A stretch of DNA of 64,000 nt, from positions 3,452,778 to 3,516,777 of the forward strand of contig NC_134030.1 in NCBI RefSeq assembly GCF_964204645.1. Reading direction: 5' to 3'. Position 1 is the stretch's first letter. Each line of letters begins with the position of its first letter. The notes below the pieces were generated by a model. It made no database searches. It worked only from the letters and a program-made list of their open reading frames with translations, and was not told where the DNA came from. Shown here piece by piece: positions 36,421 through 42,400 of this stretch. Source of the stretch: Tubulanus polymorphus (lineage: Eukaryota; Animalia; Nemertea). The position numbers and the translations under genes are program-made.

Positions 36421-39400
36421 AAAACGCCAATTTCTTCATCAATAAATACACGTGCGTGTCGATCTGAAAGCCGTGTAAGTTATTCGCGTCGCCTTGTAAT
36501 CTCATCAATAACCCACCATACGACACATAGGCAGACCTGAAAAATATAACCATATACCGACATTAGACTGAATTCATTCAATTCATTTTCAAGATGCTGG
36601 AATTCATAATGTTTATCTAAATCCAGTGTTGAATAATGCGCTGAGCACCAGCTCAACAGTTATGGTTAAATCTGACTGCGGAGCTCTGTAAACCACAACT
36701 GCGGAAAAAATTCCTATCTTTTTTTCCAAATACACACAGCATGTTAATATTAGTATATTATGTAATAACAGTACAAAGAACACAAGTAGTCACAATTGAA
36801 TCGTCGTTTCGCAAAATTTCATCCGACAAATAAGATTCTAAAAAGTAATTTAACCTGCAAGAGTGAACATCAAAATAATTGAATCAAGAAGTTGAAATTC
36901 ATTGTTATATATTTGAGGAAAGTTGTACCTCAAAGAATGAGGCAGAGCGACAGGCATGGCCCGTGTCAAATATAAAGAGAACGTGGTTGATTTGGTTCTG
37001 TGGTTGGAGACTGTGGTAGCCATCGTTGTTGTAAGATTTGGTCAGTGTTGCCGCTGGACCCAGTGGTTGAGTGTGTTTCACTGTCCCTGGGCAGGGCAGT
37101 CAGTGGCTGTTTTAGAGCCAACTTCAGACAACCAGCTAACCACACTGCCAACGCACAGTGAACATAGTCAGTTCTATCCGGTTTATTTTGGTTTTCTGTA
37201 ATTGTTTGATGTATTGTAGCCACTAAAAACTAAATCTTTCGATAAATTGAACATTTTTGCAGCGGCGAAAATGGATGAAATGAAGTCATTACGAGTCGTA
37301 TGACGATTCAGTAAACCTGTCTCAACACTCAAATACCAGCGATTTATGATATCAATGTTACAAAAATCAGCTTAAACCAGCATTCGCATCATCTATCTAG
37401 AAATAATCTACGGTTCATCGCATGAAGAAGTATCTAATCCCGATGAAATCATATCATTAAAAACCGACCGTCATACGCCGATATATATAGCGAGCTTCAC
37501 ATTTCTATATACTCGCTTGTATAATTTCTATACTCGAATAATCGCTTACAAGATTGAGATCTCGAAAAATCAATTATCAATAATAATCAATGTTGCCACA
37601 TGAATTCCCTGCCGTAATAAGTCATCATCTTTTGAGATCACGCGGATAGAAGAAGTGCTTTCCATATAGACAGATCTATAGATATCCGAAGCAGAAATCG
37701 ATAATTCGAAATCTTTCTTACATAGGTCAAGAGGTAGGTCTCTAGTACTGTTCGCTAGCAGTACTGTGCCCTATGGAATTTGCCCACTGTGAATATATTT
37801 ACCTATGGCGCATAATATGATTCAACACGTTCTATTGTACACATAAAACTGAATGATAATTACGTGCGTTATATATATATATATATGCATATGATCTATA
37901 TAATGTGTTAAGGCTTGCGCACACCTATTGCCAGCTAGAACCGCGTGACAAAAATGACAAAAAAGTCAGCGCTAGACAATACTGAAATTGATCGATCAAT
38001 TGAGCATACCCCGAATGATAACCTTATCCAGAACTAACTGGCAAATAGAATAAAGGGCATTTTTTCCATTCGAATTTCCGATGAACGTGAAAAAGAATTC
38101 GGGAAATCAATTTCGGACAAATACGCCTAAAACTGAAAGAGCATTGGATCCGATTGTTAATAATGGATATTATTGTTGAAAGGCACGTTCGTGACGACGC
38201 GAAGTAAAATATCTGGTCGATTCCTCGTTCATCAATTCATATACAGCTAGTCTACGCTCGAATACGAAAAATTCATGAATTCACCGGCGAATTTCAATCA
38301 TTTCTGGTGACATTCGTCGAATCTGCACCGCAATAAAGGCTAGTGGCTAATTCTAAAACCTATCCTAGATTTAAGTTCTGTTTTAGCGCAGTGTCAAACG
38401 TAATACGGTCTTTTCAAAATATTGGCAGCTGTTTCAAACCACCCCCCTACATGACACCGGTTATAATTCCTGGTAGCAGTTATTCAATCGTTCTAGGAAT
38501 GAGCACTAAACAGCATTTTATTACTGATTTACAACTTATATACATATATATATATATACATATTACTTTTTCGCGTTTACAAAACCTAACAAAAGGAATG
38601 TTGAAACGTTGTAATTGAATTTTTGCCCGAGCATCCATCAGGTTGTATCTCGTGTTCAGCTTGCGGCCGGGCCATCTAGGGGTTACATACCAGATAATGC
38701 ATTTACACTGGATAAACAACTGTAAAATGCACCATCGGTACGAGCCCCCAGAGGCATTCTCAAACAATTGTCAATACATACGCGATACACGATATAACTG
38801 CTAGTTTTTCAGGCTCACAGCTTCGGTCCATTCGTCCGTGTATATAGATGTTTAATGTTTTTATTGTCGATTGGCAACCGCGTCTGAGTTGATGAATAGC
38901 CAGCCGCGTTAAAAATACGGATGACTCTACAGCGCGATCACGTGAATGAGATCAAAATACGTTAAATAATCGATAATAACGATAGGATTGCGTACGTCTT
39001 TTCATGAACTTCAGTACTGATTTTCCTGGAACCGGCGAACATATCGATAAAATAAACCCGGCGGCATTACGACGATAAACTGAACTTTAACCCGCGTTCA
39101 AACAGTCAACAAAATGCCACGTATTAAAAAATATATCTTATACATGTAAACCATAGAATCCTCGGCGTCACAGACAGGAATAGTCGATACATTTTCTATA
39201 AGACCCCCACCAGAATGTGCATTTTCATCTATATACTTCAGTGGAAATGCTACATCTGATAAGAGGCTGCTAGAACAAAACTTTCATTTCGTTTCTTGTG
39301 AGATTTCGGTCGCCGGTGCGTTATAACCGCAAGCGAACCCCCACCAGATAGTGCATTTGCAACCGTTCGAAACAAGAGTGAAAATGCTCCACTGATAGGT

Positions 39401-42400
39401 ACACGCCATCGGTATTTCAGTCATTGTTTGCGACGAGTAACGAAGGTAGTGATTTCCAATAATACCCCCCACCAGATAATGCATTTACAAAATCATCATA
39501 TTCCGTGTAAATGTCATTACTGATAGGTGGCAGCACCGGTATACATTCATCCTATCTTCGGCGCGAGTTCCTACGGGAAGAATAAATTATGCGCGACAGT
39601 CAATCTAGCCGTCCACCCCCACCAGATAATGCATTTACAAGCGATTGATGTGTTGGTGTAAAGGCACTACCCAGCAGGTCGGACAACTAGCATCTCTTAA
39701 AAATAATAACTCGTTACGCGGCGTATAGATGGCGTATCGGTAGAGTCCCCCACCAGATAATGCATTTACATGCGTGTCGTAGATAAGTTAATGTAAATAA
39801 CATTACTGATAGGGAACCACGCCGATTCATTCATTCATTCTACTGATAATACCTGAAATATACATCATCATCATAATCCGCTGTTCGGGAAGAAAGTCCT
39901 GTCTTAGAAAGAGATACCACCAGCTGTGTTCACAAGACTTTAGAACTGCGAACCAGCAATGGTACTCTAACCAAAATCAAGCATCCTCGATGAAATTAAG
40001 TTCCCCGAGAAGGCTTTTATGTAAAGCCATGTGAGCGGTTGTTTGTAGCTGGACACTAAATACTATCATTATCTTGTGGTAGAATATCAAATGATCTATA
40101 AAGCCACAACTGAATCACAACTATATATAACAAAATTCGTCCTTGAAAATTAATATATATTTCCGGTACTATACCCTACTGTACATTAGTTTATTTCATA
40201 CAGTAAACATGATGAAGCTGAAGTGACTCAATCGTACTGTAATAGATATAGTAATTTTCAAGGATGAATTTTGTTTTATTTGTAATTCTGTTGCGGCTTC
40301 GTAAATACTATCATCATCATTATTATCATAATTCAACAACTTACAGTCGAGAATCGCCTGCTCCTTCGTCTCCTTCGATACGGTAAACCTTCCCGTACAT
40401 GGCGTACTCGAAGCTATCAGCTCGCGACGGTCCGGTATCGGTCGAGTCGTAGTCGCCGTCGTCCGGTTTACCGTCTTCCTTCAACGTCGTACATATTACC
40501 ATACGGAATTTATCACCTGCGAATAAAAGAAAGTTGCGGAGAAAAAGGTTACTCACGGTCGAAAACAGTTAAATCCTCAAAATAAACTTCATTCCAACTA
40601 AAATCCTGACAAAATTATTCGCTATCGCGCCCCAGTTCTCAGATACGTCGCCACGTCTAACAGTTTTAAAACACCTGTTGTCGTTCTATGACTGACTACT
40701 GCTCCAGACAGATATTTACATTTTATATATAAGCGCCAGAAATTCCCAAAAACTACGACGACGACGAAAATGACGCCATAAACCATAAACCCGAGCGAAG
40801 TTTTCCTCGAAGCTACGCGTACCATCACCTCGCGGCTTTTGTTCGGAACATTTCCTGGTGCGTTGTTTCCAGCGTATTCAACGCCCTCATGTACTGAAAT
40901 ACACGACCAGCTCCGCGAACCCTCATACATACCGAAGCCGGTATTTCATAGAAATATTTACCGATATCAATTGTCAACAATTCGAATGACGAAATACCGG
41001 CGGTGCGCTGAAATTCTACTTCCAGAAGTCGACCGTTTAAACCACGTAAAATCGAAACATTTTTCTACCGATATTAAGTTCCGTCTCGATAATGACAATT
41101 ATATGCGAATTAAATGCCATAAAACCCTTACTCTCGACTAAGCCCATCAGCAGCTGGGCCTCGTACCGCCCCGCTACATATTACGTCGAGCCGTTATCAT
41201 ACATTTACACATACAGCGAGATAATATAAGTCATAGCTGGTAATAATATACAACAAGTATGAATGACTATTCCGCTGACGCCATCCATCGTCGTATTCAC
41301 AATATAATGAATAATTCAATTACAACCAGTGTTCTTACAATATCTAATAATCATTCGTTCATATATTTCGATTTATACAAATATATATATATATAAATAC
41401 ATACATCATATTCACCGATAACTGACCTGATAATATAACGCTACCTAAACATCAGCTCAATATTCACATCCAATTACGAAAACTTAAAGCTATCATTTTT
41501 TCGAATATTCTCGATTATGAAAGCGACTCGTGTGATCTAAGATATCCCGTGACTTGACTACGACTGCTACTATTACGCGAGTGTCGGCCGGTTGGTCGGT
41601 CGATGTGTCACTGCTGGAATGTCTCATCGGGTTATCTGTTTTTCCCACCACACACCGCACAGACAAGACCGTACTTGTTCGGCGGCTTAATTTCGCTCAC
41701 TGTTTTCACTATATATAGGCAATGACATATATACTTGTTTACAAGCATTACAGCTATATACGCAGCAGTATTCTGATGTGCGTAACTACGCTGCAAGTAT
41801 TCCCTACAGTGCTACTTTGTCTTGGGTATATTTCTAAAATATCTTAAGAATGAAAATCTTCTTTTCCAAAATACGCCATACACCGAACAATAGTTGCAAA
41901 TTTCTGAAGTTTTGACGACAATAAACCGTCATAAGTTGATGCTGCAATCCGTAAATAATCAGGCACTTGCACCTAGTTTTTATACGCGAACTCGATGAAC
42001 TAAAATCTTACAAAAATGTTAACGATCCTTTCCCAATTTTAGAGTTATGAAGAAAGTTAATCATTTTCAGAATTCACGTCCTTCTGAACGTTAGAATTTT
42101 CACAAAAATCTTTTAAGAATGGTCGGAAGATAACAGTGACTAGTATAAGTGTACATGTACTACACTTGCCTTCCTACCTAACATTTAGTATACCAGGGGT
42201 AAATATATATAAATACTGAGTCTGAGCAATACAGCGCAGAGAGAGAGAGAGAGAGAGAGAAAGAGAGAGTGAGAATATGTGAAATATCTTCTAAGGCGAA
42301 GAGGAAAAAATAGCCAGGTGAAGAAGCAGTCTGCCATCCTTCCTCCTCGTGCTCCTCTCTATACTGTTGAGTAAGTCAGCGGCGGCATCGCTATCAATTC

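Follow-up and report, generated by a model that had tools for sequence, protein, structure and literature searches.

The microRNA families mir-317, mir-277 and mir-34 lie together in a cluster in insects (Drosophila; Apis), and in the honey bee this cluster is found within an intron of the Rpb8 gene (PMC2394756). Canonical-type mir-277 genes are also known from lophotrochozoans, where they have been described as bgl-miR-277a and cte-miR-277a (PMC7328434), and the Capitella name miR-277a, as it is cited there, implies a b copy as well. In flatworms (Schistosoma and Echinococcus) the seed family has undergone a lineage-specific expansion to the clustered paralogues miR-277 and miR-4989 (PMC5459504). 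Here we investigate the mir-277 genes of the nemertean Tubulanus polymorphus (Nemertea, Palaeonemertea) in a stretch of 64,000 nucleotides (nt) from contig NC_134030.1, positions 3,452,778 to 3,516,777, which is referred to as the window. Between mir-317 and the canonical mir-277 of this window there are five extra hairpins, G1 to G5, with a G-rich 3' tail. As judged from sequence, there is good reason to regard these as additional genes of the mir-277 family, generated by an old, lineage-restricted tandem expansion and kept under purifying selection.

The whole cluster is contained in the last intron of POLR2H/RPB8 (36537..40344, minus strand, 3,808 nt, GT...AG) and is in the sense orientation. 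On the minus strand the order is mir-317, G1 to G5, canonical mir-277 and mir-34. The pattern AAATGCAYNWTCTGGTGGGGG has five matches in the window, all of which are on the minus strand (39204-39224, 39338-39358, 39466-39486, 39616-39636 and 39747-39767), and none of 100 shuffles contained a match. When the preceding base is included, the resulting 22-mer is the same in G1, G2 and G3, with one variant in G4 and another in G5 (Table 1). The intervals between the 3p starts, from G1 to G5, are 131, 150, 128 and 134 nt. The family seed, AAAUGCA, is at nt 2-8 of the 3p arm in all five G copies and in canonical mir-277. An earlier note on this DNA had placed five hairpins at a spacing of 128-150 nt between mir-317 and canonical mir-277 inside a POLR2H intron, with nearly invariant 3p arms divided three, one and one, and with six copies of the seed, five of them having a different 3' end. 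The motif positions, the 3p intervals, the 22-mers, the seed search and the exon boundaries at 40345 and 36536 agree with this description in full.

Each of G1 to G5 folds singly as one long minus-strand hairpin, at -27.7 to -41.1 kcal/mol and with z scores, relative to dinucleotide shuffles, of -3.06 to -6.76; minus-strand folding was a check that the earlier note had proposed. Folding of the plus strand is clearly poorer (z -0.97 for G2 and -0.54 for G4), because many of the pairs are G:U. In the minimum free energy structures the terminal loops are 17-25 nt and the stems continue for about 9-13 positions below the 3p arm. Such an extension of the stem is the geometry expected of Microprocessor substrates. 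The copies have the architecture of the mir-277 family: an imperfect hairpin of about 33-35 bp with a duplex of about 22 nt, a lower stem that extends beyond it and 10 nt or more in the terminal loop. When the intron was folded in sliding windows, seven of the eight cluster hairpins were recovered and no further strong single hairpin appeared on the minus strand; G5 is just below the cut-off that was used. The duplex end that holds the 5' end of the 3p strand is weak in each of the six mir-277 copies (+0.9 to +4.7 kcal/mol over the terminal five positions), and the opposite end is stable (-0.4 to -3.5 kcal/mol). Because of this asymmetry, the 3p strand is the predicted guide in every copy.

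Table 1. Features of the POLR2H/RPB8 locus of T. polymorphus, in window coordinates.
Feature	Position	Strand	Mature arm	Evidence
G1, mir-277 paralogue	39735..39826	-	3p 39768-39747, UAAAUGCAUUAUCUGGUGGGGG	Fold -36.6 kcal/mol, z -6.76; Rfam 26.0 bits, E 0.0034
G2, mir-277 paralogue	39604..39692	-	3p 39637-39616, UAAAUGCAUUAUCUGGUGGGGG	Fold -41.1 kcal/mol, z -5.07; Rfam 25.9 bits, E 0.0037
G3, mir-277 paralogue	39455..39545	-	3p 39487-39466, UAAAUGCAUUAUCUGGUGGGGG	Fold -35.2 kcal/mol, z -5.20; Rfam 26.8 bits, E 0.002
G4, mir-277 paralogue	39327..39413	-	3p 39359-39338, CAAAUGCACUAUCUGGUGGGGG (5' C)	Fold -31.7 kcal/mol, z -3.49; Rfam 34.9 bits, E 7e-6
G5, most diverged mir-277 paralogue	39190..39280	-	3p 39225-39204, AAAAUGCACAUUCUGGUGGGGG (5' A)	Fold -27.7 kcal/mol, z -3.06; Rfam 21.3 bits, E 0.092
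Canonical mir-277	38672..38756	-	3p from 38705 downwards, UAAAUGCAUUAUCUGGUAUGUAA	Rfam 32.2 bits; fold -39.8 kcal/mol, z -6.91
mir-317 hairpin	39896..39981	-	3p UGAACACAGCUGGUGGUAUCUC...	Rfam RF00720 28.2 bits, E 7.7e-4, below gathering score
mir-34 hairpin, last cluster member	37082..37157	-	5p UGGCAGUGUGGUUAGCUGGU...	Exact motif; Rfam RF00456 48.7 bits, E 2.2e-9
POLR2H/RPB8 penultimate coding exon	40345..40516	-		100% identical to P0002 residues 18-73
POLR2H/RPB8 last coding exon, stop codon included	36419..36536	-		Exon mapping and database proteins

The different parts of the hairpins have diverged to very different degrees. Among G1 to G5 the 3p arms are 90% identical (range 82-100%) and the 5p arms 67%, and the loops (54%; shuffled 46 +/- 8) and the spacers (52%; shuffled 50 +/- 4) are at the level of shuffled sequence. 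Since these neutral parts are saturated, the duplications must be old. Pairing was assessed in an alignment of eight sequences, comprising the six Tubulanus hairpins and the orthologues from Lineus and Owenia. Standard pairs occupy 94% of pair cells, versus 87% after shuffling and 38-48% when the partner is slid. There are two-sided changes at four pairs, and the covariation score exceeds that of 500 out of 500 shuffles. Pairing has been maintained through one-sided as well as compensatory changes. The 5p arm of G2, for example, has many differences from the G1 and G3 arms and still pairs with an identical 3p arm through G:U and C-G pairs, and the changes in the 3p arm of G5 at nt 9-11 are matched in its 5p arm. 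From these comparisons, selection has preserved the arms, favouring a hairpin on the minus strand with an unchanging 3p sequence. The absence of evident similarity in loops and spacers, the drift of the 5p arms with pairing kept, often by G:U pairs that work only on the minus strand, and the conclusion that these are old duplicates and not a recent satellite had all been put forward in the earlier note, and all stand.

Do G1 to G5 belong to mir-277? At the Rfam gathering thresholds there is no match to any family in the window. With an E-value threshold instead, G1 to G5 and the canonical copy all match RF00730, the mir-277 family, and G4 is the top mir-277 match of the window. A custom covariance model, built from the six Tubulanus hairpins and the orthologues from Lineus and Owenia, identified only six loci in the 268-Mb genome among the 150 first-look candidates that were scored, and these six are G1 to G5 and the canonical copy. 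The exact G-tail motif is present nowhere else in the 268-Mb genome. One other genomic location, C1:29333794, matches the G-tail with one mismatch and was rejected, as the covariance model does not recognize a hairpin there. Ten metagenome contigs with the exact motif were likewise rejected as chance matches, the best mir-277 hairpin score among them being 12.8 bits (E 0.27). The assignment of G1 to G5 to mir-277 is thus made on the seed in the 3p arm, the hairpin form, the position and strand within the cluster and the conservation that is specific to the arms.

The Tubulanus intron was compared with the RPB8 loci of six other lophotrochozoans: Lineus longissimus (L007), Owenia fusiformis (L008), Patella caerulea (L015), Ostrea edulis (L016), Ridgeia piscesae (L017) and Biomphalaria glabrata (L018). 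In all six, the homologous last intron carries mir-317, mir-277 and mir-34, in this order, on its sense strand. With Tubulanus included, the cluster is therefore in the last POLR2H intron in seven of seven lophotrochozoans examined (two nemerteans, two annelids and three molluscs). As the published case of the honey bee, where the host is likewise Rpb8 (PMC2394756), agrees with these seven, the linkage between POLR2H and the cluster probably predates the split of the protostome lineages. The number of mir-277 copies per intron is one in Lineus, Patella, Ostrea and Biomphalaria, two in Owenia and Ridgeia, and six in Tubulanus. The G-rich tail is absent from the mir-277 copies of all six other loci. 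The comparison of orthologous introns, which the earlier note had suggested as a way to date the expansion, thus gave one or two copies per species, and the expansion was not seen in Lineus.

In Lineus no hairpin with AAAUGCA is present in the 370 nt that separate mir-317 from mir-277, and the 3p arm of its mir-277 (L007:33850-33932) is identical to the Tubulanus canonical one. The Owenia 3p arm is one base off the Tubulanus canonical. This identity and this single-base difference indicate that the ancestral end is ...GGUAUGUAA and that the G-tail is derived. Because the tail is common to all five extra copies, it would have arisen once, followed by four more gene duplications. The expansion may have taken place in the palaeonemertean or Tubulanus lineage, or it may have occurred earlier and been lost in the Lineus lineage. 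The second mir-277 paralogue in the two annelids has a diverged 3' half; in Owenia (L008:56611-56692; 3p CAAAUGCAUCUACUGGUAUGUGU) it is upstream of the canonical copy and in Ridgeia (L017:17564-17644; 3p UAAAUGCAUAAUCUGGCACACAU) it is downstream. Given this difference in position, the Owenia and Ridgeia duplications are probably independent. Additionally, Ostrea (L016:15836 and 16362) and Biomphalaria (L018:34529 and 34710) each have two occurrences of the mature mir-317 motif in the POLR2H intron, and these may be tandem mir-317 duplicates.

Several observations weigh against G1 to G5 being mir-277 genes under selection. With 21.3-34.9 bits (E 7e-6 to 0.09), the five copies stay short of the Rfam gathering score, which is 43. 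The undoubted canonical mir-277 of Tubulanus is also below it (32.2 bits), and the Lineus orthologue is above it (46.1 bits), so the mir-277 cut-off is uninformative in T. polymorphus. In addition, G4 starts with C and G5 with A, and G5 is the poorest fold of the five. A 5' C or a 5' A is less favourable for Argonaute loading. The palaeonemerteans are represented in the comparison by one genome, and the conservation of the arms is judged among copies and haplotypes. As for the haplotypes, seven differences between the reference and a contig of sequencing run X1 fall within 39161-39863, in the loop of G5, the loop of G3 and the spacers, with none in the arms. The arms make up 213 of 633 nt, and all seven would miss them by chance with a probability of about 0.06, so the absence of haplotype differences in the arms is only suggestive as a sign of selection. 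Finally, the runs that match the stretch are two DNA-like contig sets of one study, with no RNA run among them. The X2 contigs are DNA-like in that there is no exon coverage and no splice joints were seen (36400-40560).

Are the five copies, then, no longer microRNA genes? They could be relics, former functional duplicates of mir-277 that have ceased to be cropped or loaded, or of which only some (G1 to G3, for example, and not G4 and G5) are still active. The unfavourable 5' nucleotides of G4 and G5, their weaker folds (z -3.5 and -3.1), their interrupted lower stems and the missing RNA run would all fit such an account. However, 3p arms that are 82-100% identical beside loops and spacers at the random level imply selection through most of the history of the copies, the changes in the 3p arm of G5 are compensated in its 5p arm and no haplotype difference lies inside any arm, which leaves decay of this kind improbable. 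Still less credence is due to concerted evolution, in which short-tract gene conversion between neighbours, and not purifying selection on function, would have made the arms alike. The copies are tandem and close together (128-150 nt), and the 3p arms of G1 to G3 are identical. However, the conversion tracts would have had to end at the edges of the 22-nt arm in every copy, with the adjacent loop left at random similarity. The 5p arms of G1, G2 and G3 also differ from one another while each pairs with the same 3p arm, which fits structural selection and does not fit conversion.

It is close to inconceivable that misassembly produced the array, or that it is a young satellite with chance folding, and nothing was found in favour of this reading. 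The 2,853-nt contig of run X1 covers 37380-40210, including the entire array, with 22 substitutions and a few indels (about 1% divergence), and since it is independent and spans the whole array, the array is not a product of the assembly. The contig looks like a second haplotype or individual. Among its differences are 8 bp inserted after 39316 and small insertions around 38832-38878. Over 39237-39503 and 39573-39723 there are short contigs of run X2, which show no difference from the reference. Tandem Repeats Finder reported no array with a period of 128-150, and a tandem satellite or minisatellite was rejected because the units are not alike over their whole length and the spacers are unrelated.

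If G1 to G5 are mir-277 genes, how might the locus work? RNA polymerase II would transcribe the POLR2H host pre-mRNA and Microprocessor would crop all eight hairpins out of the intron. Dicer would then free the duplexes, and the 3p strand would go into Argonaute. Loading of the 3p strand is to be expected because, in all six mir-277 copies, its 5' end is at the weak side of the duplex, which is rich in A:U pairs. The seed and nt 13-17 are common to the six 3p species, and these should therefore have essentially the same targets bearing UGCAUUU. The main effect would be a rise of up to six-fold in the output of the mir-277 family from each primary transcript, compared with miR-317 and miR-34, which are co-transcribed.

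The tail may have a role beyond this. In the five G copies nt 13-22 are invariant, and nt 1, nt 9-12 and the opposing 5p bases vary. As the tail is invariant even though the 5p bases that pair with it differ, selection on the tail sequence itself is suggested. A role of the tail in strand asymmetry has little support, since strong asymmetry is already present in the canonical duplex and the gain in G5 is small. A genome-wide search for sites near-complementary to the G-tailed RNA, with up to 2 mismatches, returned only the genes themselves and two matches at the control level, and so gave no hint of a target or decay trigger with high complementarity. We consider it possible, though on balance doubtful, that the G-tailed copies form a functionally distinct mir-277 subfamily in which the invariant CUGGUGGGGG 3' half has been selected for a property of the mature RNA. 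That property may be a 3'-end-dependent fate (tailing or trimming, target-directed decay or Argonaute sorting) or an obligatory 3'-supplementary pairing to C-rich sites. If such a subfamily exists, the expansion would be a second regulatory channel with a common seed, going beyond dosage.

The mir-317 hairpin folds at -36.5 kcal/mol (z -5.6), and its mature motif is also in the orthologous intron of the six other species. A 90-nt window over mir-34 folds at -42.5 kcal/mol. In T. polymorphus the Rfam scores of all three conserved families are below their gathering scores (mir-34, 48.7 versus 53.4 bits; mir-277, 32.2 versus 43; mir-317, 28.2 versus 56), so a default Rfam annotation of this species would report none of the cluster. 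The mature miR-317 (39922-39943, ..AGCUGGUGGUAUC) and the G-tailed miR-277 copies (..AUCUGGUGGGGG) have the heptamer CUGGUGG in common in their 3' halves, where canonical miR-277 has CUGGUAU; this is probably a coincidence.

The cluster is assigned to the last intron of POLR2H because it lies between the end of the upstream exon, at 40345, and the start of the last exon, at 36536. The upstream exon has ...GDSR-L at its end, and two database proteins of T. polymorphus, P0002 and P0151, splice across the intron. When exon sequence 40514-40347 was translated and searched, it matched residues 18-73 of P0002 at 100%. P0002 is named by NCBI as RPABC3-like isoform X3, and the later protein work was based on the database RPB8 records, P0002 and others. 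The isoform X1 of RPB8 (P0151) has an alternative first coding exon at window positions 40715-40930 on the minus strand, which provides about 70 residues unrelated to RPB8 in place of the conserved N-terminal exons.

With these genes, the microRNA repertoire of an under-sampled phylum would gain a mir-277 family of six genes. In these paralogues, moreover, drift has affected nt 1, nt 9-12, the loops and the flanks and has spared the seed and the 3' half, so that they are a clean natural case that could help in studying the constraints on the 3' end of a microRNA. In addition, the stability of the cluster in the last POLR2H intron across nemerteans, annelids and molluscs, taken together with the bee, points to a linkage to this host that is as old as the protostomes.

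The G-tailed copies appear to be undescribed within the literature and databases searched. Among 8.4 million full-text papers searched by sequence string, none matched the mature sequence, in RNA or in DNA letters, or the tail by itself, and the shared 17-mer was found there only for Biomphalaria miR-277a. A literature search on nemertean mir-277 likewise returned nothing. In MirGeneDB 3.0 Lineus longissimus is the only nemertean, and there is one mir-277 copy at the Lineus locus. The earlier note had not recognized a G-tailed subfamily, and the six lophotrochozoan loci, these searches and the MirGeneDB species did not contain one.

The closest known relatives of G1 to G5 are the canonical mir-277 genes of lophotrochozoans (Tubulanus, Lineus, Owenia, Ridgeia, Patella, Ostrea and Biomphalaria), which they resemble in the 3p mature strand. 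Nucleotides 2-8 and 13-17 are identical, and the hairpin architecture, host intron and strand are alike. The G copies differ in having GGGGG at nt 18-22 in place of AUGUA (AUCUG, AUGUG or AUGCA in other species), in having C or A at nt 1 in two copies, and in number, with five copies versus one. The second mir-277 paralogues of the annelids Owenia and Ridgeia are likewise tandem, in the same POLR2H intron, with the seed kept and the 3' half diverged. Unlike in Tubulanus, there is one extra copy per species, and the 3' ends (..CUGGUAUGUGU and ..CUGGCACACAU) are not G-rich. The flatworm miR-277/miR-4989 genes are also clustered paralogues from a lineage-specific expansion, as the earlier note had mentioned, in another phylum, with other 3' halves and with smaller numbers of copies in each cluster. 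For the flatworm genes, expression and effects on targets are established (PMC5459504), whereas the G copies are described here from genomic sequence. The insect cluster contains the same three families, with an Rpb8 host in the bee, and differs from that of Tubulanus in its single mir-277, the mature form of which is UAAAUGCACUAUCUGGUACGACA. Set beside these systems, the G-tailed copies are an ordinary kind of event, the lineage-specific tandem expansion of a conserved microRNA family.

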